NCBI GenBank assembly: GCA_950097015.1
Contig: CATNEN010000041.1
Location: 1,674,001-1,738,000, forward strand
DNA: 64,000 nucleotides
Direction: 5' to 3'
DNA from: Macrostomum hystrix
Taxonomy: Eukaryota; Animalia; Platyhelminthes
The notes under the pieces: model-generated
Told to the model about the DNA's origin: nothing
Databases searched by the model: none
Seen by the model: only the letters and a program-made list of their open reading frames with translations
Part shown: positions 1-54,981 of the stretch, one piece after another
Numbering within the stretch: position 1 is the stretch's first letter
Layout: each line of letters begins with the position of its first letter
Translations under genes and position numbers: made by a program

Positions 1-3000
1 TCTCTTTCTCACATCGCGGCTCTTGCGGTTGCGTCTGGCCGAGCGTCTGCGGTTACGTCTGACGCGTCTGTTGGAGCGTCTGCGGATGCGTCTAGCACGA
101 CGACGGTTGCTTCTTCTCTTTCTCACATCGCGGCTCTTGCGGTTGCGTCTGGCCGAGCGCCTGCGGTTACGTCTAGCACGACGAGGGTTGCTTCTTCTCT
201 TTCTGACATCGCGGCTCTTGCGATTGCGTCTGGCCGAGCGTCTGCGGTTACGTCTGGCGCGTCTGTTGGAGCGTCTGCGGTTGCGTCTAGCACGACGACG
301 GTTGCTTCTTCTCTTTCTGACATCGCGGCTCTTGCGGTTGCGTCTGGCCGAGCGCCTGCGGTTACGTCCTAGCACGACGAGGGTTGCTTCTTCTCTTTCT
401 GACATCGCGGCTCTTGCGATTGCGTCTAGCCGAGCGTCTGCGGTTACGTCTGGCGCGTCTGTTGGAGCGTCTGCGGTTGCGTCTAGCACGACGACGGTTG
501 CTTCTTCTCTTTCTGACATCGCGGCTCTTGCGGTTGCGTCTGGCCGAGCGTCTGCGGTTGCGTCTAGCACGACGACGGTTGCTTCTTCTCTTTCTCACAT
601 CGCGGCTCTTGCGGTTGCGTCTGGCCGAGCGCCTGCGGTTACGTCTAGCACGACGAGGGTTGCTTCTTCTCTTTCTGACATCGCGGCTCTTGCGATTGCG
701 TCTGGCCGAGCGTCTGCGGTTACGTCTGGCGCGTCTGTTGGAGCGTCTGCGGTTGCGTCTAGCACGACGACGGTTGCTTCTTCTCTTTCTGACATCGCGG
801 CTCTTGCGGTTGCGTCTGGCCGAGCGCCTGCGGTTACGTCTAGCACGACGAGGGTTGCTTCTTCTCTTTCTGACATCGCGGCTCTTGCGATTGCGTCTAG
901 CCGAGCGTCTGCGGTTACGTCTGGCGCGTCTGTTGGAGCGTCTGCGGTTGCGTCTAGCACGACGACGGTTGCTTCTTCTCTTTCTCACATCGCGGCTCTT
1001 GCGGTTGCGTCTGGCCGAGCGCCTGCGGTTACGTCTAGCACGACGTGGGTTGCTTCTTCTCTTTCTGACATCGCGGCTCTTGCGATTACGTCTGGCCGAG
1101 CGCCTGCGGTTACGTCTGGCGCGTCTGTTGGAGCGTCTGCGGTTGCGTCTAGCACGACGACGGTTGCTTCTTCTCTTTCTGACATCGCGGCTCTTGCGGT
1201 TGCGTCTGGCCGAGCGCCTGCGGTTACGTCTAGCGCGTCTGTTGGAGCGTCTGCGGTTGCGTCTAGCACGACGACGGTTGCTTCTTCTCTTTCTGACATC
1301 GCGGCTCTTGCGGTTTCGTCTGGCCGAGCGCCTGCGGTTACGTCTGGCGCGTCTGTTGGAGCGTCTGCTGTTGCGTCTAGCACGACGACGGTTGCTTCTT
1401 CTCTTTCTGACATCGCGTCTCTTGCGGTTGCGTCTGGCCGAGCGCCTGCGGTTACGTCTAGCACGACGACGGTTGCTTCTTCTCTTTCTGACATCGCGGC
1501 TCTTGCGGTGGCGTCTAGCCGAGCGTCTGCGGTTACGTCTGGCGCGTCTGTTGGAGCGTCTGCGGTTGCGTCTAGCACGACGACGGTTGCTTCTTCTCTT
1601 TCTGACATCGCGTCTCTTGCGGTTGCGTCTGGCCGAGCGCCTGCGGTTACGTCTAGCACGACGAGGGTTGCTTCTTCTCTTTCTGACATCGCGGCTCTTG
1701 CGATTGCGTCTAGCCGAGCGTCTGCGGTTACGTCTGGCGCGTCTGTTGGAGCGTCTGCGGTTGCGTCTAGCACGACGACGGTTGCTTCTTCTCTTTCTGA
1801 CATCGCGGCTCTTGCGGTTGCGTCTGGCCGAGCGCCTGCGGTTACGTCTAGCACGACGAGGGTTGCTTCTTCTCTTTCTGACATCGCGGCTCTTGCGATT
1901 GCGTCTAGCCGAGCGTCTGCGGTTACGTCTGGCGCGTCTGTTGGAGCGTCTGCGGTTGCGTCTAGCACGACGACGGTTGCTTCTTCTCTTTCTCACATCG
2001 CGGCTCTTGCGGTTGCGTCTGGCCGAGCGTCTGCGGTTACGTCTGGCGCGTCTGTTGGAGCGTCTGCGGTTGCGTCTAGCACGACGACGGTTGCTTCTTC
2101 TCTTTCTCACATCGCGGCTCTTGCGGTTGCGTCTGGCCGAGCGCCTGCGGTTACGTCTAGCACGACGACCGTTGCTTCTTCTCTTTCTGACATCGCGGCT
2201 CTTGCGGTTGCGTCTGGCCGAGCGTCTGCGGTTACGTCTGGCGCGTCTGTTGGAGCGTCTGCGGTTACGTCTAGCACGACGACGGTTGCTTCTTCTCTTT
2301 CTGACATCGCGGCTCTTGCGGTTGCGTCTGGCCGAGCGCCTGCGGTTACGTCTAGCACGACGAGGGTTGCTTCTTCTCTTTCTCACATCGCGGCTCTTGC
2401 GGTTGCGTCTAGCCGAGCGTCTGCGGTTACGTCTGGCGCGTCTGTTGGAGCGTCTGCGGTTGCGTCTAGCACGACGACGGTTGCTTCTTCTCTTTCTCAC
2501 ATCGCGGCTCTTGCGGTTGCGTCTGGCCGAGCGCCTGCGGTAACGTCTAGCACGACGAGGGTTGCTTCTTCTCTTTCTCACATCGCGGCTCTTGCGATTG
2601 CGTCTGGCCGAGCGTCTGCGGTTACGTCTGGCGCGTCTGTTGGAGCGTCTGCGGTTGCGTCTAGCACGACGACGGTTGCTTCTTCTCTTTCTGACATCGC
2701 GGCTCTTGCGGTTGCGTCTGGCCGAGCGTCTGCGGTTGCGTCTAGCACGACGACGGTTGCTTCTTCTCTTTCTCACATCGCGGCTCTTGCGGTTGCGTCT
2801 GGCCGAGCGTCTGCGGTTACGTCTGACGCGTCTGTTGGAGCGTCTGCGGATGCGTCTAGCACGACGACGGTTGCTTCTTCTCTTTCTCACATCGCGGCTC
2901 TTGCGGTTGCGTCTGGCCGAGCGCCTGCGGTTACGTCTAGCACGACGAGGGTTGCTTCTTCTCTTTCTGACATCGCGGCTCTTGCGATTGCGTCTAGGCC

Positions 3001-3290
3001 GAGCGTCTGCGGTTACGTCTGGCGCGTCTGTTGGAGCGTCTGCGGTTGCGTCTAGCACGACGACGGTTGCTTCTTCTCTTTCTGACATCGCGGCTCTTGC
3101 GGTTGCGTCTGGCCGAGCGCCTGCGGTTACGTCTAGCACGACGAGGGTTGCTTCTTCTCTTTCTGACATCGCGGCTCTTGCGATTGCGTCTAGCCGAGCG
3201 TCTGCGGTTACGTCTGGCGCGTCTGTTGGAGCGTCTGCGGTTGCGTCTAGCACGACGACGGTTGCTTCTTCTCTTTCTCACATCGCGGCT
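1..3290. repeat. Coding tandem array of interspersed 81-bp and 114-bp units
   Basis: tagcacgacg recurs at 370, 484, 565 (spacing 114, 81); the long unit is the short unit plus 33 bp. Confidence 0.97.
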
Positions 3291-3681
3291 TCTCTGGGCA
3301 CGTCGGTCGGATCGTCTGCCCTGACGCCTGTTTTGCCGCCGTGAGTCGCGACGACTTCGCCTGTCGTCACGTCGTCCTCGGTTTTCCCTTCTTGCGGGTC
3401 TCCCAATAAAAGAAGGTTTTATAGTCTTCTTTGCTGCCGATGCGGGTGCGGCAGTCTTGGCAGCAGCTGGTGCGGCTGGCTTCTTCAGCTTGTTTGCTGC
3501 ATTCGGAGGTGGTGCTGATAGCTGAAATTCAAATTTGGTTGTTGATAATTGTGTCTGTCTCTTTTTTGGGACGAGCACACAGAATGGCCTATCTTGTCAT
3601 GGAGCAGTTGATTATTCGTTGATGACTTACCACAAGGGTGCAGAGCACCGCTGCGCATGCAGCCAACAGAAGAAGTCTCAT
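1..3681 (-). CDS. Signal-peptide-bearing Arg-rich tandem-repeat protein, copy 1 (3' end beyond window; two apparent 1-nt insertions)
   Basis: aaacATG at 3681; exon 1 3681-3631 = MRLLLLAACAAVLCTLV; intron 3630-3522 (GTAAGT...TTTCAG, 109 bp); exon 2 from 3521 = LSAPPPNAANKLKKPAAPAAAKT... then RRNRKSRDVRKRRSN repeats. Extra bases at ~2997 (tctaggcc vs tctagcc/tctggcc) and ~369 (gtcctagc vs gtctagc) shift the frame. Confidence 0.75.
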
Positions 3682-7071: not shown

Positions 7072-9245
7072 ATGCATGCGAGAAAACCCCAAAGGGGGGC
7101 AGCTAAGCAAGCCCTGAGAAACTTGGGCCTCGACAGTGAATCCAGTGACGAAGGGTCTTTCTTCACTGCTGAGAGATTTGGAGAGGACAATAACCAAGCC
7201 GACAATAATGGGCTTCTAGAAGATGAGCCGACACTTCCGCATGACGATTGGAGGTCGGTAACAGCAGAGACTGATGCTCGTTCTAATAATCTTCCCGAAT
7301 TTTTGGGTGTGAATGGAGTTAACCCTGGATTTTCTACTCCTGATGATGTTGAAGACAGCTGGATGATGATTTTCGAGAAGTTTTTTCCGGATAATTTGCT
7401 GCTTCAGATGTGCGAGTGGACAAATAAGAGAGCACAGCTAGAGATCGCTAAGTTTCAAGATAAACATGGAGATGAGGAGCTGCCGTATGGCTTGAGATCT
7501 TGGAAGCCGTGTACTGTTTGCGAAATGAAGAAAGTAATTGCCGTTAACTTGTATACCGGAGTTGTTCAGAAGCCAGAGCTGACGTCCTACTAGTCCGTGG
7601 ATCCGTTCTACTTCCATCCGTACTTCCAGAGCATGGAGATGCTCCCTCGCTCTCGCTTCCAACAGATCATGGCGTGGCTGCGTTGCTATGACTGCCTGGA
7701 TTTCAACGACGATGATCCCTTGTATAAGATCCCTTGTATCCCTTGTATAAGATAAGAGTGTGCGGAAAATCTGCAAGAACAACAACTATACTAGCCAGGC
7801 CAAAACATTGCTGTTGATGAAGCGCTGCTCCTGTATAAGTGGCGGCTGATTTTCAAGCAGTACATATAATAATATATAATAATTGACACTAGACCCAAGG
7901 GCCAGTGCAGGTGTTGTGTGTCAAGCACACTAGCAGGTGGGGACTGCACACCTATTGTACTCCCCGGCTCTCTCGGACACCGGTTGACAGTCGCGTGTCA
8001 GCAATGGAATTTATTTTTCCAAACATATCGGCAGCATCCAAACCCCACAGAATTGCCGCACAGAACTGCTTTATTCCACGCCAGCCGGAATTATTATTAC
8101 CCGACGAAATTTCGGTACTCATTTGCAGCTGAGTAGACTGTGTGCACATCAGGGCAAAGCAGCTTGCCAAAGGCTGCACGAATAGTTCTAGACTAGGTCG
8201 GGAGTCGAACCCAGGACCATCTGATCCAGAGTCCGACACCTTACTGACTGAGCTATCCGCCCCTTACATGCAGTACATGCTCAACAAAATAGCCAAGTAT
8301 GGTATCAAGCTGTACTGTCTTGCAGAGTCCTCTACAGGATACATGTGGAACTGTCTGATACATTCAACCGCCATCGCAAATGAACAGTTTGCCAGCGATG
8401 TGCCACAGCTGTCACTCAGCGAGAGAATCGTCGTGGAGCTTTGCCACGACATTCTTGACCTCGGATATCAAGTTTTCTGTGACAGCTGGTTCTCATCTGT
8501 TATACTGGCCACGTTCCTCCTGAACCGAGGAAATACCTTAGGCTCGTAACTGGGACAGTTCGCAAAGATCGAGGCATTCCACCAATTTTGCGAGACATGC
8601 GGTACTGCAACCACCGAGCCATTCATTTGCCCGGCTTGGCGACGTCCTCGCTGTGAAACTGGTCGACAGACGAAGCTCAGGAACGAAGACCGTCTATCTA
8701 GTGAATTCAGCGTCAACGGCTGCTTGCTCTTTAGTCAGCCGAATACTGCGCGGTGGCGTAGAGCAGCAGCTTCTAAAGCCAAACTCGGTTTTGCAGTACA
8801 ATCAGCACATGGGCGGCGTCGACCGGCTGGATGCCGCAGCCCAGCGCCCTATAGCGCATGCTGCCGGACGCAGAAATGGTTCGTAAAGCTGGCTGTGTTT
8901 CTGGTGCAGCAACTGATTCGCAACTCCTGGATTGTGTACCGACACCTCGGTGAATCTCTGAGCTTTCTCAATTACACTGAAAGGTGTGTAAAACATTTGC
9001 TTGAGAGCAGTGGAAATTGTCGATCAAGAGTAAAGCGTCAGGCTCTGCCTCATCAGCAAAGCGAGATCCACCACCCTATAGAAAAGTTGCCCGCGACCGC
9101 AGCACAAGAGCGGCCCACTAAACGCGGTCGAGTCTGCTATCAGCGCGGATCGAAAAAGCGGACCGTCTACTTCTGCCAAGGCTGCGTTGGTCAACCTGGC
9201 CTGTGCATGCGACCATGTTTTTTCGCCTGGCATGTAGCCAATTAA
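7072..9245 (+). mobile_element. Decayed piggyBac (PGBD4-like) transposase, interrupted by a SINE
   Basis: FEKFFPDNLL..TN, VDEALLLYKWRLIFKQY|MLNKIAKYGIKLY (rejoined across the insert), FCDSWFSS, YNQHMGGVDRLD, C-terminal Cys-rich CYQ..FCQGC..LC..PCF..WH; stops and frameshifts. Confidence 0.9.
7866..8269 (-). mobile_element. tRNA-derived SINE (~404 bp) with 9-bp TSD
   Basis: Minus strand: A box TAGCTCAGTCAGTA (8255-8242), B box GGTTCGACTCC (8211-8201), CORE-like CCTTTGGCAAG...CAGCTGCAAATGAGTAC, (ATT)-rich tail; GCAGTACAT duplicated at 7857-7865 and 8270-8278. Confidence 0.85.
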
Positions 9246-11719: not shown

Positions 11720-13571
11720 CTTCTATGACATGCTGGTGGACAACGACTTTCATTTGAAAATGAATACTTAATAAAGTATTTAAGTTCAAACCTCACGTTA
11801 TATCTAAATTGAAACAAACAATGTGGATTCGGCTGTGATTTAGCAGAAGCCGCTCGTTTCAGCTGACTGACCGACTTCTTGGTTGCTTCCTTCGCGAGAT
11901 GACCGGAGTAGTGAGCTCGGACTCGAGAGAATCCCCCCTCCCCAGATTCCAACGCCGGCTGAGGCTGTTGCAACTTCGCCCGCGCTGCTTCCGTTTCCTG
12001 TTTATCTTGTCTCCTTTTAAGCTTTGGGTTTGGAGGCCGCATTGATACCCATTACTTCGTCTTCCCCTGGCTTCTGGCCAGTTTTTGCGTGCTTTGCTTT
12101 CAGATTTGGTTGATCACTTACAACCACTGGCCAAATACTGTTCGGTAACGCAGAGAAACAATCAGGGTGATGCAATCGAGCTTAAATTGTTGGTACAAGC
12201 TACCAGACAAAGCTTCACCAACGACCACTAGTCAGACCGCACTATTTATCAAAGATGGAGTCTTGTAGTAGTTGTACTGCAAGACAGCGCTTGGCGTCAT
12301 GTCAGAGAAAAAGTTTTTTGTCTGGCTTAAAAGTACGCCCAGATCGACTGCAGAACTTCTGGAGGCCCGAAACTGCCCAACCTTCCTTAGAAGCTGATTA
12401 TTAAAAGTATATTAAAAGCTTAGTTCAATTGATGCAGCGATCGGAGACAGAGCCGTAGAAGCCTTGTCGATAATTCCAAATAAATTACGCAAGGTTCGAC
12501 GATTTCGTGACGCAAGTCTCAACGCTTACAGTAAAGGATCTGCAATCGGAAGAAACTATTAAAAAACCTCTCCTGGAAACTTAGCGCCTTCGGTTATATC
12601 CTACGCTCTAATAAGTTGGCACTATCAATGGTTACGTCAAAAAATACTGTCTACTGGCCACAAAGTGATCAGAAGGTGGGGAAAGGGCACACAAACTGCT
12701 GACTAACTGCACGTTTCAATTAAAAATAATTTTTTCAATTGACAAAAGGCTTAGGAGCCTGCTGCGAATCATGGAGTGGAGTTGTGCAGCCTCATCATGA
12801 TGCTTTGTAGAACGGCACTAAGCAGTTGAGCTACGAGCTCGGCGAGAAACAGCTGCGCCAGAAATCAAGATGGACATTGAGAGCACAAGCAAGCTCGCCG
12901 CAACATGGTACGGAAAACAAATACCACCAAGTTTGGATGGAATTTGAGCTTGAATTTGTGGAATGCATGAAGTGGCACTGGCTCGCTCTCAATATTACGA
13001 GTATTATATTACGAGTATTATTACGAGTATAATATTCTTAGACAAAAATTGACCTTTTCTGCAAACCGCAAACTACTCGTACATGCAGTTTGTGTGGAGC
13101 AATTCACAAACAAAGCCATTTTGCAGTCTCAATTACCAACAATCGATATACGAGAATTAATTGCATTCCTGTCAAGTGCATTCAAAAAAAGTACATCTCA
13201 AAAAGAAAAGCACATCTCCTCGTTCAAACTCAGCGTCCAATTCTATCTCGACACTCATGTTCTCTTTACGCATTAAATACGACTCTTAGAATTCAAATTA
13301 AATAGTCAACTCGTGACATCTAAAATTACGCCCGAAAACCAGCACGATATATAAAAAATTAATTAACGAATTTATTCCCCTCGAGTGTAATAATCCTCAA
13401 TATACCACATTTTACATTCCCTGTGTTAATTTTTTTTCACTGAAAACACTAACAAACATAACATTAAAGGATTATTTCCATTTGAACAAGTTCAAATATT
13501 CAAATTATATTTTGAACGACAAAAGCAAAAGCGCATCTCAAATCTCATCATAATGCGCCGAGCATTGGTTT

Positions 13572-16500
13572 TTAGCGTCTGCGGTTACGTCTGGCGCGTC
13601 TGTTGGAGCGTCTGCGGTTGCGTCTAGCACGACGACGGTTGCTTCTTCTCTTTCTGACATCGCGGCTCTTGCGGTTGCGTCTGGCCGAGCGTCTGCGGTT
13701 ACGTCTAGCACGACGAGGGTTGCTTCTTCTCTTTCTGACATCGCGGCTCTTGCGGTTGCGTCTGCTGGAGCGTCTGCGGTTACGTCTAGCGCGTCTGTTG
13801 GAGCGTCTGCGGTTGCGTCTAGCACGACGACGGTTGCTTCTTCTCTTTCTCACATCACGGCTCTTGCGGTTGCGTCTGGCCGAGCGTCTGCGGTTACGTC
13901 TGGCGCGTCTGTTGGAGCGTCTGCGGTTGCGTCTAGCACGACGACGGTTGCTTCTTCTCTTTCTGACATCGCGGCTCTTGCGGTTGCGTCTGGCCGAGCG
14001 TCTGCGGTTACGTCTGGCGCGTCTGTTGGAGCGTCTGCGGTTGCGTCTAGCACGACGACGGTTGCTTCTTCTCTTTCTGACATCGCGGCTCTTGCGGTTG
14101 CGTCTGGCCGAGCCTCTGCGGTTACGTCTAGCACGACGAGGGTTGCGTCTTCTCTTTCTGACATCGCGGCTCTTACGGTTGCGTCTGGCCGAGCGTCTGC
14201 GATTACGTCTGACGCGTCTGTTGGAGCGTCTTCGGTTGCGTCTAGCACGACGACGGTTGCTTCTTCTCTTTCTGACATCGCGGCTCTTGCGGTTGCGTCT
14301 AGCCGAGCGTCTGCGGTTACGTCTGGCGCGTCTGTTGGAGCGTCTGCGGTTGCGCCTAGCACGACGACGGTTGCTTCTTCTCTTTCTGACATCGCGGCTC
14401 TTGCGGTTGCGTCTGGCCGAGCGTCTGCGGTTACGTCTGGCGCGTCTGTTGGAGCGTCTGCGGTTGCGTCTCGCACGACGACGGTTGCTTCTTCTCTTTC
14501 TGACATCGCGGCTCTTGCGGTTGCGTCTGGCCGAGCGTCTGCGGTTGCGTCTAGCACGACGACGGTTGCTTCTTCTCTTTCTGACATCGCGGCTCTTGCG
14601 GTTGCGTCTGGCCGAGCGTCTGCGGTTACGTCTGGCGCGTCTGTTGGAGCGTCTGCGGTTGCGTCTCGCACGACGACGGTTGCTTCTTCTCTTTCTGACA
14701 TCGCGGCTCTTGCGGTTGCGTCTGGCCGAGCGTCTGCGGTTGCGTCTAGCACGACGACGGTTGCTTCTTCTCTTTCTGACATCGCGGCTCTTGCGGTTGC
14801 GTCTGGCCGAGCGTCTGCGGTTACGTCTGGCGCGTCTGTTGGAGCGTCTGCGGTTGCGTCTCGCACGACGACGGTTGCTTCTTCTCTTTCTCACATCGCG
14901 GCTCTTGCGGTTGCGTCTGGCCGAGCGTCTGCGGTTGCGTCTAGCACGACGACGGTTGCTTCTTCTCTTTCTGACATCGCGGCTCTTGCGGTTGCGTCTG
15001 GCCGAGCGTCTGCGGTTACGTCTAGCACGACGAGGGTTGCTTCTTCTCTTTCTGACATCGCGGCTCTTGCGGTTGCGTCTGGCCGAGCGCCTGCGGTTAC
15101 GTCTGGCGCGTCTGTTGGAGCGTCTGCGGTTGCGTCTAGCACGACGACGGTTGCTTCTTCTCTTTCTGATATCGCGGCTCTTGCGGTTGCGTCTGGCCGA
15201 GCGCCTGCGGTTACGTCTGGCGCGTCTGTTTGAGCGTCTGCGGTTGCGTCTAGCACGACGACGGTTGCTTCTTTTCTTTCTGATATCGCGGCTCTTGCGG
15301 TTGCGTCTGGCCGAGCGCCTGCGGTTACGTCTGGCGCGTCTGTTGGAGCGTCTGCGGTTGCGTCTAGCACGACGACGGTTGCTTCTTCTCTTTCTGACAT
15401 CGCGGCTCTTGCGGTTGCGTCTGGCCGAGCGTCTGCGGTTACGTCTAGCACGACGAGGGTTGCTTCTTCTCTTTCTGACATCGCGGCTCTTGCGGTTGCG
15501 TCTGGCCGAGCGTCTGCGGTTACGTCTAGCACGACGAGGGTTGCTTCTTCTCTTTCTGACATCGCGGCTCTTGCGGTTGCGTCTGGCCGAGCGTCTGCGG
15601 TTACGTCTGGCGCGTCTGTTGGAGCGTCTGCGGTTGCGTCTCGCACGACGACGGTTGCTTCTTCTCTTTCTCACATCGCGGCTCTTGCGGTTGCGTCTGG
15701 CCGAGCGTCTGCGGTTGCGTCTAGCACGACGACGGTTGCTTCTTCTCTTTCTGACATCGCGGCTCTTGCGGTTGCGTCTGGCCGAGCGTCTGCGGTTGCG
15801 TCTAGCACGACGAGGGTTGCTTCTTCTCTTTCTGACATCGCGGCTCTTGCGGTTGCGTCTGGCCGAGCGCCTGCGGTTACGTCTGGCGCGTCTGTTGGAG
15901 CGTCTGCGGTTGCGTCTAGCACGACGACGGTTGCTTCTTCTCTTTCTGATATCGCGGCTCTTGCGGTTGCGTCTGGCCGAGCGCCTGCGGTTACGTCTGG
16001 CGCGTCTGTTGGAGCGTCTGCGGTTGCGTCTAGCACGACGACGGTTGCTTCTTCTCTTTCTGACATCGCGGCTCTTGCGGTTGCGTCTGGCCGAGCGTCT
16101 GCGGTTACGTCTGGCGCGTCTGTTGGAGCGTCTGCGGTTGCGTCTAGCACGACGACGGTTGCTTCTTCTCTTTCTGATATCGCGGCTCTTGCCGTTGCGT
16201 CTGTTGGAGCGTCTGCGGTTGCGTCTAGCACGACGAGGGTTGCTTCTTCTCTTTCTGACATCGCGGCTCTTGCGGTTGCGTCTGGCCGAGCGCCTGCGGT
16301 TACGTCTTGCGCGTCTGTTGGAGCGTCTGCGGTTGCGTCTCGCTCGACGACGGTTGCTTCTTCTCTTTCTGATATCGCGGCTCTTGCGGTTGCGTCTGGC
16401 CGAGCGTCTGCGGTTACGTCTGGCGCGTCTGTTGGAGCGTCTGCGGTTGCGTCTAGCACGACGACGGTTGCTTCTTCTCTTTCTCACATCGCGGCTCTTG

Positions 16501-17113
16501 CGGTTGCGTCTGCTGGAACGTCTGCGGTTACGTCTGGCGCGTCTGTTGGAACGGCTGCGGTTGCGTCTAGCACGACGACGGTTGCTTCTTCTCTTTCTCA
16601 CATCGCGGCTCTTGCGGTTGCGTCTGGCCGAGCGTCTGCGGTTACGTCTGGCGCGTCTGTTGGAGCGTCTGCGGTTGCGTCTAGCACGACGCCGGTTGCT
16701 TCTCTTTCTCACATCGCGGCTTCTCTGGGCACGTCGGTCGGATCGTCTGCCCTGACGCCTGTCTTTCCGCCGTGAGTCGCGACGACTTCGCCTGTCGTCA
16801 CGTCGTCCTCGGTTTTCCCTTCTTGCGGGTCTCCCAATAAAACAAGGTTTTATAGTCTTCTTTGCTGCCGATGCGGGTGCGGCAGTCCTGGCAGCAGCTG
16901 GTGCGGCCGGCTTCTTCAGCTTGTTTGCAGCATTCGGAGGTGGTGCTGATAGCTGAAATTCAAATTTGGTTGTTGATAATTGTGTCTGTCTCTTTTTTTG
17001 GGACGAGCACACAGAATGGACTATCTTGTCATGGAGCAGTTGATTATTCGTTGATGACTTACCACAAGGGTGCAGAGCACCGCTGCGCATGCAGCCAACA
17101 GAAGAAGTCTCAT
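13572..17113 (-). CDS. Signal-peptide-bearing Arg-rich tandem-repeat protein, copy 2 (intact, 1,143 aa)
   Basis: ATG 17113; exon 1 17113-17063 (17 codons); intron 17062-16953 (GTAAGT...TTTCAG, 110 bp, phase 0); exon 2 16952-13572 open to TAA (1,126 aa); candidate AATAAA at 13376-13371. Confidence 0.82.
13575..16710. repeat. Coding tandem array of 81/114-bp units (same family as 1-3290)
   Basis: Same unit sequence and variants as copy 1. Confidence 0.97.
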
Positions 17114-17804
17114 GTTTGTGCTTCTCAGAGTTAACTTCAATGACTTGCATGATGGCTGGAATTCGAGTTGAATTTATGCCAAAGTTTTGCATGTTTCTTC
17201 GCAGGTGGTCGCTGTCGCACCTGTCGATTGTCAACTATTAAGCGCTGCGTTGGCAGATTTTTTTAACTTCCCTTGGGTATATCTCTTCGTACTGCCCGCA
17301 TGCCCAGCGTTCTGTTTAACTTGAAGATCTGATCTGAGTATTTGCATTTTCGCTCAGTGGCTTATGGTTTCTCGTTTTACTTTGAACTTCACTATTATTC
17401 GCCTTGGGATCCAACTCAGAACTGTGTTGTATTTGTGCATCTGTCTGTTACACTACCAAACTTTGTTTACGGAAAGTCGCAGTGGCGGCGGTAGCAGTAG
17501 TTGGCGAAACTTCTCCCGGAGACAAATTTCGGAGCTCGTTAGCGCACCCCTGTGGCGCTGGTCGTTTGCTGGTTCGGCAGGTGAGCTTTTCCCTCGGTAT
17601 TTTTGCGTTTCACTTTCTTTGAGCAAGAAGCATTTGCCTGCTTAAATAAAAATTGTAGCGTTTCGTTGGATTTTGACCTTTTTCCTTGTACGAGTTTGCT
17701 CGTACGAAATGCATGTTTTTGCATTTTCCTTGCTGTCTGCTTTCTAAGGGTTGTTTGGGTATTGTTTGAAAACGATCTACATTAGAAGTAAGATCCGTAA
17801 TGTT

Positions 17805-18906
17805 CTGGAAAAGCTGGAAAGCAGAGCTGGAAAGCAGAGCTGGAATGCAGAGCTGGAAAGCAGAGCTGGAATGCAGAGCTGGAAAGCAGAGCTGGAAAGC
17901 AGACCTGGAATGCAGAGCTGGAAAGCAGAGCTGGAATGCAGAGCTGGAATGCAGAGCTGGAATGCAGAGCTGGAATGCAGAGCTGGAATGCAGAGCTGGA
18001 AAGCAGAGCTGGAATGCAGAGCTGGAATGCAGAGCTGGAATGCAGAGCTGGAATGCAGAGCTGGAATACAGAGCTGGAATGCAGAGCTGGAATGCAGAGC
18101 TGGAAAGCAGACCTGGAATGCAGAGCTGGAAAGCAGAGCTGGAATGCAGAGCTGGAATGCAGACCTGGAATGCAGAGCTGGAAAGCAGAGCTGGAATGCA
18201 GAGCTGGAATGCAGAGCTGGAAGGCAGAGCTGGACTGCAGAGCTGGAATGCAGAGCTGGAATGCAGAGCTGGAATGCAGAGCTGGAATGCAGAGCTGGAA
18301 TGCAGAGCTGGAATGCAGAGCTGGAATGCAGAGCTGGAAAGCAGAGCTGGAATGCAGAGCTGGAATGCAGAGCTGGAATGCAGAGCTGGAATGCAGAGCT
18401 GGAATGCAGAGCTGGAATGCAGAGCTGGAATGCAGAGCTGGAAAGCAGAGCTGGAATGCAGAGCTGGAATGCAGAGCTGGAATGCAGAGCTGGAATACAG
18501 AGCTGGAATGCAGAGCTGGAATGCAGAGCTGGAAAGCAGACCTGGAATGCAGAGCTGGAAAGCAGAGCTGGAATGCAGAGCTGGAATGCAGACCTGGAAT
18601 GCAGAGCTGGAAAGCAGAGCTGGAATGCAGAGCTGGAATGCAGAGCTGGAAGGCAGAGCTGGACTGCAGAGCTGGAATGCAGAGCTGGAATGCAGAGCTG
18701 GAATGCAGAGCTGGAATGCAGAGCTGGAATGCAGAGCTGGAATGCAGAGCTGGAATGCAGAGCTGGAAAGCAGAGCTGGAATGCAGAGCTGGAATGCAGA
18801 GCTGGAATGCAGAGCTGGAATGCAGAGCTGGAATGCAGAGCTGGAATGCAGAGCTAGAATGCAGAGCTGGAATGCAGAGCTGGAATGCAGAGCTGGAAAG
18901 CACAGC
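17805..18906. repeat. 13-bp satellite GCAGAGCTGGAA(T/A), ~84 copies, with a 429-bp higher-order duplication
   Basis: 13-nt period; rare variant aatac at 18065 and 18494 (33 units apart) followed by the same variant order. Confidence 0.97.
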
Positions 18907-19400
18907 TCTGCACCCTTGTGGTAAGTCATCAACGAATAATCAACTGCTCCATGACAAGATAGGCCATTCTGTGTGCTCGTCCCAAATAAGAGACAGACAC
19001 AATTATCAACAACCAAATTTGAATTTCAGCTATCAGCACCACCTCCGAATGCTGCAAACAAGCTGAAGAAGCCGGCCGCACCAGCTGCTGCCAAGACTGC
19101 CGCACCCGCAGCGGCAGCAAAGAAGACTATAAAACCTTGCTTTTTTGGGAGACCCGCAAGAAGGGAAACGGAGGACGACGTGACGACAGGCGAAGTCGTC
19201 GCGACTCACGGCGGAAAGACAGGCGTCAGGGCAGACGATCCGACCGACGTGCCCGGAGAAGCCGCGATGTGAGAAAGAGAAGCAACCGTCGTCGTGCTAG
19301 ACGCAACCGCAGACGCTCCAACAGACGCGCCAGACGTAACCGCAGACGCTGGGCCAGACGCAACCGCAAGAGCCGCGATGTCAGAAAGATAAGAAGCAAC
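18905..19400 (+). pseudogene. Truncated copy 3 of the Arg-rich gene
   Basis: Retains the end of exon 1 (ctctgcacccttgtg), the 109-bp intron 18921-19029, the linker and ~1.5 repeat units; ATG lost; 1-nt deletion at ~19168 (gggaaacggagg vs gggaaaaccgagg). Confidence 0.85.
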
Positions 19401-20129
19401 TGGAAAGCAGAGCTGGAAAGCAGAGCTGGAATGCACAGCTGGAATGCACAGCTGGAAAGCAGAGCTGGAAAGCAGAGCTGGAATGCACAGCTGGAATGCA
19501 CAGCTGGAAAGCACAGCTGGAAAGCAGAGCTGGAAAGCAGAGCTGGAAAGCAGAGCTGGAAAGCAGAGCTGGAAAGCAGAGCTGGAAAGCAGAGCTGGAA
19601 TGCACAGCTGGAATGCACAGCTGGAAAGCAGAGCTGGAATGCACAGCTGGAAAGCAGAGCTGGAAAGCAGAGCTGGAATGCACAGCTGGAATGCACAGCT
19701 GGAAAGCAGAGCTGGAAAGCAGAGCTGGAATGCACAGGTGGAATGCACAGCTGGAAAGCAGAGCTGGAAAGCAGAGCTGGAATGCACAGCTGGAATGCAC
19801 AGCTGGAAAGCACAGCTGGAAAGCAAAGCTGGAAAGCAGACCTGGAATGCAGAGCTGGAAAGCAGAGCTGGAAAGCAGAGCTGGAAAGCAGAGCTGGAAT
19901 GCACAGCTGGAAAGCAGAGCTGGAAAGCAGAGCTGGAAAGCAGAGCTGGAAAGCAGAGCTGGAATGCACAGCTGGAAAGCAGAGCTGGAAAGCAGAGCTG
20001 GAAAGCAGAGCTGGAAAGCAGAGCTGGAATGCACAGCTGGAAAGCAGAGCTGGAAAGCAGAGCTGGAAAGCAGAGCTGGAAAGCAGAGCTGGAATGCACA
20101 GCTGGAAAGCAGAGCTGGAAAGCAGAGCT
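19400..20129. repeat. 13-bp satellite, second block (~56 copies; GCACAGCTGG variants common)
   Basis: Same 13-nt period, different variant spectrum from the first block. Confidence 0.97.
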
Positions 20130-20730
20130 ACAAGGCGTAATGACTCAATAACTAGGCAGGGTTTTGGGTTGGAGAAGGGGGTGAGCCCTACAAAAGGACA
20201 AGACTGCTTAAAGTTTATTTGGCAGCGAAGTACAATCGATAAGCGAACAATCAATGAGCGAACAGCGCTCATGCTTAAATTGAGTGAGGGACACAAAGCA
20301 CGATGGATTTCAAATGAGTGCTAGCGCACTAGCCAAAGAGGCATTAAATTTCATGGATTAAAAATAGCTAACAAAGGATAAATTAGAAAAGCATTAATAA
20401 GCAAGAAGTCTTAACAAAATTTGCAGTTAAGTGTTTGAACAGTCTGTTCAAGCTTCCGCCTGTCAATCACACGAGTCAGCTTCTACGTAGGTTCTAGTCT
20501 TAATTGCATCTCCTCCTGTGGTCCTTCGCCAGGCGAGAATGTGGCTTGCGTGATAGATTCCTTATCGGGCTGTCGGACGCCACGTGGCTGAAGCGGCTGC
20601 TTAGCAGGCTGCTCAGGATGCTGTTCTGATAGGCAGCCGTTTGACCTTCGTGGCGTGCCATCGGCAGACTGCATGAGCAAGGAATCGCCTTGGACCTGCG
20701 AAACTGTCCAACTTTCATCTTCCGGAAAGC

Positions 20731-22166
20731 TTGTCGAGAAATCGTTTCCAGGAAATTCTATCATTCCTGCGATGCTATGATTGCAGACAGCTTGATGACA
20801 ATGATTGTCTCTGCAAGATTCGACCTTACATATCGCTTGTGCACGCGGTTTGCACGAATGTGTATGCTCCGGAGCGGGAGGTCAGTGTTGATGAGACCTT
20901 AGTTCTGTACAAGGGTAGGGTGCTGATGAAGCAGTACATACCCAGCAAGAAGGCTAAGTATGGCTTAAAGCTTTACTGTCTGACAGAGGCTTCTACTGGC
21001 TACCTTGTGAACAGTCTTGTACACAGCACTGCACTTCAGCACGCTCGCTTTGGCGATGGTATGAACTGCGAAGGTCCATTAATGAGTGAGAGGACTGTGG
21101 TCGAACTGTGCCGCAACCACCTGAACCTCGGATACCATGTCTTCTGCGAAAATTGGTTCACCTCTTTTCGACTATCATATTTCTTGTTGAAAAAAACACG
21201 TTGATGACCGGCACGGTGCGGAAAGATCGAGGAATTCCCGAGCAACTGAATGAGAAGCAGATTGTTGCTCCCGGCTTTCATGCGCAAAGGCCTCAAACTG
21301 GCTGTAAAGGTGTGTGACAGAAAATCGTCCTGTGTCAAGAAAGTTTAACTCACTGATACGAAGGAGCCTGCTAAGTGCTTGCCCAAGACGCGATTGCAGA
21401 TTTTTACGAGGAGGTGCAGAAGAACATATTGATTGCTCAACCAGCAACAGTTGCCGCCTACAATAAACACACATGGGTGGTGTTGACCGACTCGACGCGG
21501 CGCTGAGCATGTGTAGCGCCAATCGACGCACGTACAAATGGTTCCACAAGCTGCTGTTCCACTTCACCCTGCAGCTGGTCCACAACGCATGGATAGTATA
21601 CTCAAAGTGCGGCGGGTCAAAGCCATTCCAAGCCTTTTTGTGCTCAAGCATTCGCATCCTGATAGAATCGACTGGCAGAGGTCAAATGCGCGCTGCGAAC
21701 GGTGCAGCACTGCTCAGGCAGACGGCTTCTGAGCAGCACTTCTCTGAATTGCTGCAACTGAATCGTATTTACCTGCACGGCGTGCCCCACTTCGCCGGCA
21801 CTCTGCGCCGCTTTGAATGCTCTGCATGCTTTGAACGATGGCACTCACATTGATTGCATTCGTTAATTCGTTAATTAACATCTCAGCGACAAACAGTTAC
21901 GTGGAAGTTTCTGCTTTTTGTTTTTTTGATTGGCAAAAACTTTAGGTTTCAGATTATTAAACTACTGTTTTTTAAATTGCCTGAATGTTAGGACTGCCTC
22001 GACTCAGACCTAAGCAATCAGGATTTACTTCCAGTTAGATGGCTCTCCAGCCACATCGGGTTTTCTCAGAGTGATTTCAACTCTGGCCATAGACGACAGA
22101 ATGACTATGGGCTTTTAAAATAATAGTCGATGGCTGCTCTGCACCCACTGGGTTCGAGGGGGTTAA
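20731..22166 (+). mobile_element. Second decayed piggyBac element with probable right end
   Basis: MSRNRFQEILSFLR, VSVDETLVLYKGR..KQYIPSKKAKYGLKLY, GTVRKDRG, MGGVDRLD, YKWFHKL; ends ...GGTTCGAGGGGG-TTAA (22163-22166); left end not found. Confidence 0.88.
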
Positions 22167-39414: not shown

Positions 39415-40001
39415 CAAATTCATTCAGTAGATACCAAATAAATTCAGTAGACACCCCGATTCAATAAGTAGACACCCCCCATTCAACCAGTAGTTACCCA
39501 GATTCAATCAGTAGACACCCCCATTCAACCAGTAGTTACCCAGATTCAATCAGTAGACACCCCCCATTCAACCAGTAGTTACCCAGATTCAATCAGTAGA
39601 CACCCCCCATTCAACCAGTAGTTACCCAGATTCAATCAGTAGACACCCCCATTCAACCAGTAGTTACCCAGATTCAATCAGTAGACACCCCCATTCAATC
39701 AGTAGACACCCTGATTCAATCAGTAGACACCCCCATTCAACCAGTAGTTACCCTGATTCAATCAGTAGACACCCCCATTCAACCAGTAGTTACCCAGATT
39801 CAATCAGTAGACACCCCCATTCAACCAGTAGTTACCCAGATTCAATCAGTAGACACCCCCATTCAGTCAGTAGACACCCTGATTCAATCAGTAGACACCC
39901 CCATTCAGTCAGTAGACACCCAGATGCAATCAGTAGACACCCCCATTCAGTCAGTAGTTACCCAGATTCAATCAGTAGACACCCCCATTCAATCAGTAGA
40001 T
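39415..40001. repeat. Minisatellite of alternating 20/21-bp subunits (~41-bp dimer)
   Basis: attcaatcagtagacacccc(c) / attcaaccagtagttacccag. Confidence 0.95.
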
Positions 40002-40509: not shown

Positions 40510-41877
40510 AAAACAACCTGCCCAATGAGTTCTACTCTCCAAAGCTAAAAGGGTGCATTTGAAGGTTATACAACCTGCCAAATGAGTTCTACTCTCCAAA
40601 GCTAAAGTGGTGCATTTGAAGGTTATACAACCTGCCCAATGAGTTCTACTCTCCAAAGCTAAAAGGGCACATTTGAAGGTTATACAACCTGCCCAATGAG
40701 TTCTACTCTCCAAAGCTAAAGTGGTGCATTTGAAGGTTATACAACCTGCCCAATGAGTTCTACTCTCCAAAGCTGGAAGGGTACATTTGAAGGTTATACA
40801 ACCTGCCCAATGAGTTCTACTCTCCAAAGCTAAAGTGGTGCATTTGAAGGTTATACAACCTGCCCAATGAGTTCTACTCTCCAAAGCTGGAAGGGTACAT
40901 TTGAAGGTTATACAACCTGCCCAATGAGTTCTACTCTCCAAAGCTAAAAGGGTACATTTGAAGGTTATACAACCTGCCCAATGAGTTCTACTCTCCAAAG
41001 CTAAAAGGGTACATTTGAAGGTTATACAACCTGCTCAATGAGTTCTACTCTCCAAAGCTAAAAGGGTACATTTGAAGGTTATACAACCTGCCCAATGAGT
41101 TCTACTCTTCAAAGCTAAAAGGGTGCATTTGAAGGTTATACAACCTGCCCAATGAGTTCTACTCTCCAAAGCTAAAGTGGTGCATTTGAAGGTTATACAA
41201 CCTGCCCAATGAGTTCTACTCTCCAAAGCTAAAAGGGTGCATTTGAAGGTTATACAACCTGCCCAATGAGTTCTACTCTCCAAAGCTAAAAGGGTGCATT
41301 TGAAGGTTATACAACCTGCCCAATGAGTTCTACTCTCCAAAGCTAAAAGGGTACATTTGAAGGTTATACAACCTGCCCAATGAGTTCTACTCTCCAAAGC
41401 TAAAAGGGTACATTTGAAGGTTATACAACCTGCCCAATGAGTTCTACTCTCCAAAGCTAAAAGGGCACATTTGAAGGTTATACAACCTGCCCAATGAGTT
41501 CTACTCTCCAAAGCTGGAAGGGTACATTTGAAGGTTATTCAACCTGCCCAATGAGTTCTACTCTCCAAAGCTAAAAGGGTGCATTTGATGGTTATACAAC
41601 CTGCCCAATGAGTTCTACTCTCCAAAGCTAAAAGGGTGCTTTTGAAGGTTATACAGCCTGCCCAATGAGTTCTACTCTCCAAAGCTGGAAGGGTACATTT
41701 GAAGGTTATTCAACCTGCCCAATGAGTTCTACTCTCCAAAGCTAAAAGGGTGCATTTGATGGTTATACAACCTGCCCAATGAGTTCTACTCTCCAAAGCT
41801 AAAAGGGTGCATTTGATGGTTATACAGCCTGCCCAATGAGTTCTACTCTCCAAAGCTAAAAGGGTGCATTTGAAGAT
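40510..41877. repeat. 57-bp minisatellite (~24 copies)
   Basis: Unit caacctgcccaatgagttctactctccaaagctaaaagggtacatttgaaggttata. Confidence 0.97.
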
Positions 41878-42105
41878 TATAAGCATAAACAAAGCAATAC
41901 TTCTAAGTGTTTAAGGGGAGATTGCTTAGATTCTTTGACTCAATTTAAAAACTGAAAAAATGAATGAACGAAACTTAGAAGTATTCTACCCAAAGTAGTA
42001 TACTACGTGTAATGCAGCGCGGTTGTATTAGGTCTATTGCACTGCGTTATTGCATTCGATAAATGTGAGTTGACGCACATGGCTTGGCTGGTATCCCAGG
42101 CCAGC

Positions 42106-52800: not shown

Positions 52801-54981
52801 GCAGTGATAACGAAGATGAGGCGGGGGCTGAACAGAGAGAAAGAGAATGGGCCCGTAGTGCTCAGGATTCGAACATTGATCTTGTTTTCCTGAGAGATGC
52901 TGTAGCTGGAAAGGTAGAGAGGTTGTCTAAGCAGGAGCTCCAAGGTTGCAGTCGTGAGCTCAGAGCCTTATGGGCTATGTTTGACGAACTGTCTGTTGAG
53001 GACGGTCTGCTGCTTCGGAACAAGCCAGCCAAGAAAAGGAAGCCCGCTGCCAAGCTTACGGTCATCCCCTGAGTCTGCGAATGTAGATGAACTAGTGACC
53101 CAACTACCACAGAGCCGTTAATCACTCGGGGATAAAAAAGACTTTAGGAGTGGTAAAAAAGAACTTTCAAATCTCGAACCTAGAAACTATGGTCAAGGGA
53201 GTCGTAGCCAGCTGTGAGATTTGCGCTAGGACTAAGAAATGCAAGCGAAAGAACAAAGCTCCGATGCAGCCAACTCTAGCCGGGTACCCGAACCAGGTCG
53301 TGCATGTAGACCATTGCGGACCGTTCCCTGAACAGGAAGGCTACCGGTATCTGCTTGTAATGATTGACAGATTCACCGGATTTGTGGAAATTGTCCCTGT
53401 GAAAGACGTAACTGCCGAGACAACCGCGGCAGCAATCCTGACAGAGTGGATTGTTCGCTACGGTGCTATGGAGCAAATGGTCTCGGACAATGGCACAGCA
53501 TTCATAAATAACATTGTTGCAGAGCTGACCCGCTTGCTAGAGATCGATACCGTTAGAATCACTGCTCGCCGCCCCCAGGCCAACGGGAAGGTGGAACGCA
53601 ACATCCAGACTATTAAGAGTCAAATTCGAGCAGTCTGTGCTGAGAGGCATGTGACTTGGCCCTTTGCCGCTAGGTGTGTAGGAATGAGCATCCGCTCTCT
53701 AGAATCCGAATCGACAGGCATGACACCTGCTAAGCTTTTTCTGGGCCGTGAATTTCAAATGCCCCTAGACCTGATGTACAACCCACCAAGGCAAGATTGC
53801 TATGACCCGGACAGTTACGCGCACCGACTCCACCGAACTCTTGTCGAAACCTCTGCCACCGCACGGGCTGTTAGGAAGAAGGCACAGGCTAGGCAGAAGC
53901 GTTACTATGACAGATCGGTTTATAAGTCAAGCTACGAGGTTGGAGAGCTAGTGTGGGTTCTAAACCCCGACCACAAGGGCCTCGACCCAGCTGTTTGGTT
54001 TGGTCCGTACAAGGTTATTCAGAAGGTCTCTGAGAGAAACTATAGGTTGATTCCAGAGTTTTCGCGAGAGAATCCGTTTAGAGTCCCGAATCCTAGTCAC
54101 AACATCTATAACGTAGACCGGATGAAGAGGTGCATCCGCCAGCCAAACTATCAGGATGTGGTTGATAGATTTAGATTAGACACCGTAGCAAGGATGCCAC
54201 GCTCATCTAAGCTAGGACAAGGAGATCTGGATTCCAGCTCCAGACAGCTGAGCTTTAGTTCTGACTCGACTTCCGAACCAGACTTGGTCACTGTCCCACC
54301 TCCGGGTCAGAAGAGCCGCTCTTTTCCGAGAAGCCAATCGTCATCAATCACACAGCCAGTTCAACAGCCAATCACACAGCCAGTTCAACAGCCAATCACA
54401 CAGACAGTTCAACAGCCAATCACACAGCCAGTCGAACAGCCAATCACACAGCCAGTTCAACAGCCAATCACACAGCCAGTTCAACAGCCAATCACACAGC
54501 CAGTTCAACAGCCAATCACACAGCCAGTTCAACAGCCAATCACACAGCCAGTTCAACAGCCAATCACACAGACAGTTCAACAGCCAATCACACAGCCAGT
54601 TCAACAGCCAATCAAAACACTGCCAGTGGAACAGCCAAATGCTCAACCAGTCACTAACCAGAGTCACCACCCGAGGTGCAACCTGAACAAGCACCACAAG
54701 CAGTAAACATTGTCAATAATGAACAGGTGCCAGACATCGGTGCTGAAGTTGAAGTCACAGCAGAGCCAAATCCAGATCCTCAGGCAACACCAATACCAAA
54801 TATGCCACCAGAACCACAACCACAAATAGAACACGAGCACGAACATGAACACGAATACGATCAGACAGACCATGCACAGAGACCAGCTTGCACTGTTACG
54901 AGGTCCGGCCGGCAAGTAAGGCCGCCGGTCAGATTCCTTTCCACGCTGGTCAACCTGCTCAGGAGAGGTAACGAGAGCTAA
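49807..54981 (+). CDS. pol: Pol: cold-shock-like domain, protease, RT, RNase H, integrase; broken by ~5 single-base indels
   Basis: LLDPGA (50167), WASPIVLVKKKDGTWRLCVDYRALN, YLDD (51524-51535), LDCDSS..VGAVL, YCATMRELL, H-x5-H..C-x2-C, VHVDHCG, SDNGTAF, NGKVERNI, TRSGRQVRPP. Confidence 0.88.
54345..54612 (+). repeat. 24-bp coding repeat (QPITQPVQ)x~11 in the integrase tail
   Basis: aatcacacagccagttcaacagcc repeated in frame. Confidence 0.92.

Follow-up and report, generated by a model that had tools for sequence, protein, structure and literature searches.

The minus strand of a 64,000-nucleotide stretch of the genome of the flatworm Macrostomum hystrix (contig CATNEN010000041.1 of assembly GCA_950097015.1, positions 1,674,001 to 1,738,000; hereafter the window) carries at positions 13572-17113 a two-exon gene for a very long arginine-rich repeat protein, referred to below as copy B; two related sequences, copies A and C, lie in the same window. 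The coding sequence starts with an ATG at 17113, in the context aacATGa, and the coding part of exon 1 (17063-17113, 51 nt) provides 17 codons (MRLLLLAACAAVLCTLV), which make up most of a signal-peptide-like leader, up to the GTAAGT at which the intron begins. The intron (16953-17062) is 110 nt long, extends from GTAAGT (from 17062) to TTTCAG (to 16953), and its removal, seen in spliced RNA contigs, joins the leader in phase 0 to exon 2 at 16952 (LSAPPPNAANKLKKP... / LSAPPPNAANKLKKPAAPAAARTAAPASAAKK...). Exon 2 comprises 3,381 nt (16952-13572). Its first part (16695-16952, residues 18-103, covered by RNA contigs down to 16720) encodes the end of the leader (LSA), an Ala/Pro/Lys-rich linker that includes PPPNAANKLKKPAAP..., and a degenerate Arg/Asp/Ser transition; it is followed by the repeat array (13575-16694; 1,040 aa, 56.5% Arg) and by the stop codon TAA (13572-13574). 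The spliced coding sequence of 3,432 nt encodes 1,143 aa. The 5' untranslated region (UTR), as far as RNA contigs extend (17114-17135), contains no upstream ATG and has an A at position -3 of the start codon. A TATA-like ATAAAT at 17172-17177, inside an upstream block that copies A and B have in common and about 40 nt upstream of 17135, the furthest 5' reach of any RNA contig, may serve as a promoter element, and an AATAAA at 13371-13376, 195 nt past the stop, is a candidate poly(A) signal. Both are on the minus strand.

An initial annotation of this DNA had proposed a hidden two-exon gene in which a GTAAGT...TTTCAG intron joins the leader in phase 0 to LSA, and had called the N-terminus given by the list of open reading frames (ORFs) nonsensical. 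The coordinates of that model agree with ours and the spliced contigs match it. The second remark was also well founded: the intron length of 110 nt is not divisible by three, so that the mechanically called ORF at 13572-17234 reads the leader in the wrong frame and shows a meaningless N-terminus.

Public sequencing runs containing 16740-17400 were sought and RNA-type runs of three coded organisms were found. Four runs (X6, X7, X1 and X4, from organisms A, B and C), two of which carry no RNA label, were mapped on 16720-17500. The joint 16952/17063, at which the initial annotation had asked for junction reads, is present in one assembled contig per run in all four runs (the alignment, 'skips 110, CT..AC' on the plus strand, corresponds to GT..AG on the minus strand), and word depth is 0 over 16963-17043, within the intron, and everywhere upstream of 17118-17135. 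The contigs of all four runs must be RNA-derived because genomic DNA would cover both the intron and the upstream region. The gene is transcribed and spliced exactly as proposed. One X6 contig has its 5' end at 17135 and the others end at 17118-17120; none carries a foreign 5' tail, so that nothing in these contigs points to a spliced leader. In run X6 the first repeat region is present in two versions of similar depth, and several of the changes by which copy A departs from copy B (R39K, C54S and a silent one at P32) are also seen in the contigs of organisms A and B, so that more than one family member or allele is expressed. A run search with the 3' UTR, made over all kinds of runs, listed DNA runs only and carries no information on RNA. 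Separately, run X5, a sediment metatranscriptome, shares 7% of the words sampled from the gene's 5' region, which suggests that transcripts of this flatworm or of a close relative are present in the environmental sample.

Which of the frames of the array encodes protein can be judged from the variation among its units. The arrays of copies A and B were cut into units at an S-R-D anchor, and each distinct departure from the unit consensus was scored in three frames. The 32 units of 114 nt show 26 variants; read in the Arg frame, 19 of these are synonymous and 7 are replacements, against 25% synonymous expected from all possible single changes (binomial p=4e-7, a value that is indicative only since recently duplicated units are not independent, which leaves the frame specificity unaffected). 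In the other two frames 1/26 and 3/26 variants are synonymous. A separate set of 38-aa units has 19 of its 25 variants at codon position 3, and the 81-nt units, in which 5 of 13 variants are synonymous, point in the same direction and are not significant alone. Judged by this pattern, the Arg frame is the frame under purifying selection. Both properties that tell a protein-coding gene from a transcribed satellite, namely a spliced sense transcript and frame-specific purifying selection, are found here. Taken together, the spliced transcript and the frame-specific synonymous bias show that the gene is real and expressed and that selection maintains its Arg frame.

Two other reading frames of the array were considered as sources of a product and rejected. 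The sense +1 frame, with an acidic reading (DATADAP...), is nearly open; it is interrupted by five TGA stops, all of them due to GTC>GTG substitutions that leave the Arg-frame residue unchanged, and these stops together with the variant patterns dismiss it. The antisense frame is open for 1,050 codons (13603-16755, plus strand) with a Leu/Arg-rich reading; it is ruled out by the orientation of the splice sites and is a by-product of composition. The long antisense frame could nevertheless be taken to mean that such repeats stay open by composition, and that the locus is a transcribed satellite-like array or a decaying family without a functional protein, its open frame being due to composition and recent amplification. 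The absence of a homologue in the protein searches run would agree with this, as would the two frameshifts of copy A in the assembly and the state of copy C, a dead fragment. Under that explanation, however, one would not expect a synonymous bias that is specific to one frame, a variant that puts stops in the neighbouring frame without altering the Arg-frame product, a leader exon and a phase-0 intron that are conserved in both long copies, a sense strand fixed by the splice orientation, or the expression of at least two sequence variants. We therefore regard a satellite without a protein product as very unlikely.

The spliced product of 1,143 aa has an extreme composition: 53.5% Arg, 6.0% Lys, 11.9% Asn, 10.4% Ser and 8.4% Ala, with 0.4% Gly. 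Basic residues account for 59.6% of it, Asp and Glu together for 37 of the 1,143 residues, and the net charge is about +643. If it is made and secreted, no protein this large has, to our knowledge, a higher Arg content or positive charge density, although no systematic check was made. The N-terminal part of 103 aa is followed by 19 units of 38 aa, 11 units of 27 aa and an end piece of 21 aa. The units, 114 nt (38 aa, 24 of them basic) and 81 nt (27 aa, 17 basic) in length, are built from two modules, the 11-aa RRARRNRRRS[N/A], which occurs twice per 38-mer and once per 27-mer, and the 16-aa RRNRKSRDVRKRRSN. With 1,040 aa in the array, these counts agree with the initial annotation, which had described more than 1,000 aa of such repeats. 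It had also described the repeats as having no Cys, aromatic residue or Gly and one Asp per unit, and this holds for the consensus unit but not throughout, since Gly appears in two variant units. The single Cys of the product, Cys54, is Ser in copy A. The longest basic run in the chain has five residues, and the basic runs are separated by segments of only 1-3 residues (N, A, SN, S, SA, DV). The chain contains 133 overlapping R-X-[K/R]-R furin-type motifs, 388 dibasic pairs and 52 R-R-X-S motifs, the last resembling sites of basophilic kinases.

The leader, which is the same in copy A, has by inspection the layout of a classical cleavable signal peptide with a short basic n-region, a hydrophobic h-region (typically about 7-15 residues or more) and a polar c-region, as had been noted from the sequence before: R2 is followed by a 16-residue hydrophobic core of Leu, Ala, Val and Cys (L3-L18; mean Kyte-Doolittle hydropathy 2.85 over 15 residues), and the V-L-S-A that closes the leader is followed by PPP. 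Candidate cleavage sites with small residues at -3 and -1 are V17-L18-S19|A20 and L18-S19-A20|P21, of which the first is the likelier because Pro at +1 is disfavoured. Judging from this layout, the product probably enters the secretory pathway. The predicted chain that would result from the removal of about 19 residues has about 1,124 aa and a mass of about 147 kDa.

The composition of the chain is protamine-like, and it might be asked whether the product is secreted at all. If the leader were an uncleaved anchor or irrelevant, the chain would stay in the cytosol or nucleus and might condense nucleic acid there, as a giant protamine-like sperm protein or as an RNA or granule condenser. Its Arg fraction of 53.5% lies within the range of protamines and protamine-like proteins (50-70%), which it also resembles in having Ser interspersed in R-R-X-S contexts, here 52 times. 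A hydrophobic core of 16-18 residues is borderline for an anchor. According to the charge-difference rule, an excess of positive charge on the C-terminal over the N-terminal side of the segment could keep the C-terminus in the cytosol, and this is the situation here (K28, K30 and K31 against R2). On the other hand, R2, the small residues at -3 and -1 and the Pro cluster form the classic layout of a cleavable signal, and free cytosolic poly-Arg is generally toxic, which favours compartmentalisation. Unlike the product described here, which has more than 1,100 aa and a leader on its own exon, known protamines (about 30-100 aa) and protamine-like proteins (up to a few hundred) are nuclear, lack a hydrophobic leader and are shorter by a factor of 10 to 30. 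The hydrophobic leader and a length at least 10 times greater exclude a protamine in the family sense, that is, a small signal-less Arg-rich protein. A non-secreted nucleic acid condenser in the wider sense appears improbable to us.

If the product is secreted, its many basic motifs raise the question of what happens to it on the way. It may be a polyprotein precursor that is cut by furin/PC-type convertases into short oligo-Arg peptides with antimicrobial, membrane-active or cell-penetrating properties, or trimmed to nothing useful. The 133 R-X-[KR]-R motifs, the 388 dibasic pairs and the signal-peptide-like leader would all suit such a fate, and a leader of this kind, tandem cationic units and dibasic sites are shared with multi-copy cationic antimicrobial precursors. 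Those precursors, however, normally carry an acidic pro-region or spacers from which discrete peptides are released, and neither is found here: Asp and Glu are as scarce as stated above, and dibasic processing would not yield a discrete peptide. Since only 1-3 residues separate the basic runs, full processing followed by carboxypeptidase trimming would leave no peptide at all. In addition, the polybasic regions of Mlig-ap1, a protein of the same genus, survive secretion intact (PMC6410801). Processing to short peptides is thus an unlikely fate, even if it deserves more attention than retention in the cytosol or nucleus.

Mlig-ap1 of M. lignano, with its secreted polybasic regions, is the nearest precedent for the poly-Arg protein. 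It is a secreted 'cohesive' protein found in adhesive footprints, with a signal peptide, a polybasic repeat of more than 3,600 aa that makes up two-thirds of the protein, and a reported pI above 14; trypsin-based mass spectrometry largely misses its polybasic regions and its sequence defeated short-read assembly (PMC6410801; PMC8621496). The polybasic regions are Gly/Arg/Lys-rich (PMC8621496), and the polybasic repeat is thought to act electrostatically on anionic glycans (PMC6410801, PMC8621496). The two proteins have in common the genus, a signal-peptide-like leader and a very large low-complexity polybasic repeat. They differ in that no sequence relationship between them is detectable, in that the repeats described here are made of Arg, Asn, Ser and Ala with 0.4% Gly and 6% Lys, and in the size of the gene, which has two exons for 1,143 aa. 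Further, the core of Mlig-ap1 (C-type lectin, vWD, C8, TIL and EGF domains), which is the source of its cohesive function, has no counterpart in the poly-Arg protein, in whose exon 2 Pfam detects no such domain.

Since ap1 proteins are drawn with a signal peptide followed by a polybasic repeat (PMC8621496), the poly-Arg gene could be thought of as a piece or a paralogue of Mlig-ap1, corresponding to its N-terminal polybasic region, and not as a separate gene; moreover, the short motif NRKSR is common to the repeat and to the published ap1 peptide SRKPRRKNRKSRKP, against which an antibody was raised. But the ORF closes with TAA and is followed by an AT-rich tail with AATAAA, no vWD, C8, TIL, EGF or lectin domain was found with Pfam, and the composition is not that of the Gly/Arg/Lys-rich ap1 repeat. 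In all six frames, SRKPRRKNRKSRKP is absent from the window and SRKP-type repeats are absent from the repeat. Identity with Mlig-ap1 is ruled out by the gene's own stop and 3' tail, the absence of SRKPRRKNRKSRKP, the Gly-poor composition and the lack of the domain core, and a derivation from it as a piece or paralogue is extremely unlikely. The contrast drawn in the initial annotation, with globular domains in Mlig-ap1 and none here, therefore stands.

A further comparison is offered by the Pc cement proteins of sandcastle worms, which are secreted, repetitive and strongly basic, are stored in granules with polyanionic partners, and work through charge complexation. The poly-Arg protein is likewise strongly basic and repetitive. 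The sandcastle-worm proteins are small, rich in Gly, Lys, Tyr (DOPA) and His, and cross-linkable; the poly-Arg protein has no obvious curing chemistry, because it has no Tyr, His or conserved Cys and almost no Gly.

The reading that in our opinion best accounts for these observations is a polycation of the secretory pathway that works as an intact polymer, and we put its probability at roughly 55% on the basis of the sequence and of the analogy with Mlig-ap1. Translation would begin at the first AUG, and the hydrophobic leader of 19-20 residues would direct co-translational entry into the endoplasmic reticulum and be removed, ending with Ser19 or Ala20. The chain that remains (about 1,124 aa, about +643, without domains) may then be stored in granules of gland cells, charge-neutralised by a polyanion; physical chemistry and the Mlig-ap1 precedent suggest that such a partner would be needed, because six in ten residues are basic. 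After release, the protein would act by charge alone, binding anionic glycans, surfaces or cells multivalently or condensing them. By analogy, the most plausible roles would be those of a cohesive or filler part of a glue, or of a component of mucus or of a rhabdite-type secretion; a role in defence or in seminal fluid is possible. That a macrostomid can handle such a product seems feasible by the same analogy, as Mlig-ap1 shows that huge polybasic regions are already secreted in this genus.

Several points weigh against an intact secreted polymer. For a cleaved signal, a hydrophobic core of 16-18 residues is near the upper end of the length range, and a cut after Ala20 would be disfavoured by the Pro at +1. 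Because of the 133 furin-type motifs, the intact polymer must somehow escape the convertases, and the precursor has no acidic pro-piece that would neutralise its charge in cis. The RNA support, finally, spans only about 330 nt at the 5' end of the mRNA, and the short-read contigs end in the repeats.

A more specific version, which we put forward tentatively and with considerable doubt, is that a stand-alone secreted poly-Arg polymer of about 150 kDa, with a longer paralogue adjacent to it in the genome, is a major gland product of macrostomids and forms the polycation half of a granule-stored complex coacervate that contributes to glue cohesion or to the condensation and swelling of rhabdites or mucus. 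Shredding by trypsin and collapse in short-read assemblies could explain why such a polymer has been overlooked so far. If this is true, gland cells translocate and export a chain of about +640 while shielding it from furin-type convertases.

Should the protein be made and secreted, one would like to understand how a chain of about +640 avoids translation stalling, passes Sec61, escapes convertases and becomes neutralised in granules. It would add a domain-free electrostatic component to the known constituents of flatworm secretions, with a bearing on temporary bioadhesion and on rhabdite and mucus biochemistry, and it could be a natural template for arginine-based coacervate materials. The gene also illustrates a blind spot, in that repeat masking, ORF-only annotation, short-read assembly and tryptic proteomics each hide genes of this kind. 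The value of the finding would rise sharply with the detection of the protein in granules or secretions.

The searches for relatives returned none. For the whole of exon 2 there is no Pfam family at E<=1. A word-indexed search of 5.8 billion clustered proteins gave no match for the N-terminal 104 aa of exon 2, for exon residues 1-100 or for repeat residues 104-600, and HMMER gave no match for the N-terminal 104 aa of exon 2 among 1.84 billion cluster representatives. In a feature comparison with the ESM Atlas the best score was 0.74, with recognition far below the useful range. The protein is not described in the literature that we consulted on Macrostomum Arg-rich proteins, protamines, rhabdites, secreted protamine-like proteins and gland in situ screens. 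The accessible portion of the supplements of a seminal-fluid screen (PMC5977470) contains none of RRNRR, RRARR, MRLLLLAAC and 'arginine', and the accessible portion of the supplements of PMC6410801 contains none of 'KR-region', 'RRNRK' and 'NRKSR'. By the measure of these protein searches, in which no relative was found, this is a lineage-restricted gene of a Macrostomum flatworm. A secreted low-complexity flatworm polycation already has a precedent in the genus; what is new is the domain-free architecture, the chemistry based on arginine and not on Lys/Gly, and the charge density.

Copy A lies on the minus strand at 1-3681, with an ATG at 3681, exon 1 at 3631-3681, an intron of 109 nt at 3522-3630, and an exon 2 that begins at 3521 and continues off the start of the window. 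A segment of 57 nt that comprises exon 1 and GTAAGT (3625-3681 in copy A) is identical between copies A and B, and an upstream block of about 165 bp common to both differs between them by a single base, beyond which the similarity stops abruptly. At the start of exon 2, which includes the linker, the two copies differ by two synonymous changes, about four replacement changes and one codon insertion or deletion. The Arg frame of copy A is broken twice in the assembly by 1-nt insertions, which create a 115-nt unit and an 82-nt unit near positions ~3010 and ~365. Since about 880 codons between the two breaks are uninterrupted, the insertions could be assembly errors or very recent lesions. Copy C is a fragment of 496 bp on the plus strand (18905-19400). 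Of exon 1 it retains only the final 16 nt, the first 35 nt with the ATG being absent; the intron is kept, the linker has a 1-nt deletion, and about 1.5 repeat units follow. The fragment is dead. The three-copy family of the initial annotation is thus correct in that the intron is present in all three copies, and has to be amended in that one copy is intact (B), one is frame-broken in the assembly (A) and one is a start-less, frameshifted fragment (C).

Fragment C is surrounded by a 13-bp satellite, AGCTGGAATGCAG, that occupies 17812-20129 (about 2.3 kb, ~176 copies); because of its composition, none of the six frames contains more than one stop. The fragment, in inverted orientation, interrupts this satellite about 1.8 kb upstream of the intact copy B, and the satellite variants differ across the insert, being AATGCAG-rich on the left and of the AAAGCAG/AATGCAC types on the right. 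Remnants of a piggyBac-type transposase are found between copies A and B at 7072-9245, with the Pfam domain DDE_Tnp_1_7 in two ORFs and zf-Tnp_2 in a third, and a further piggyBac-like stretch can be recognised by eye at about 20730-21200, just beyond the AGCTGGAATGCAG satellite. Elsewhere in the window there are three other tandem arrays, at 39445-40000 (42/21 bp x 13), at 40513-41881 (57 bp x 24, with one minus-strand frame open over 174 codons) and at 54345-54638 (24 bp x 12, stop-free in four frames).

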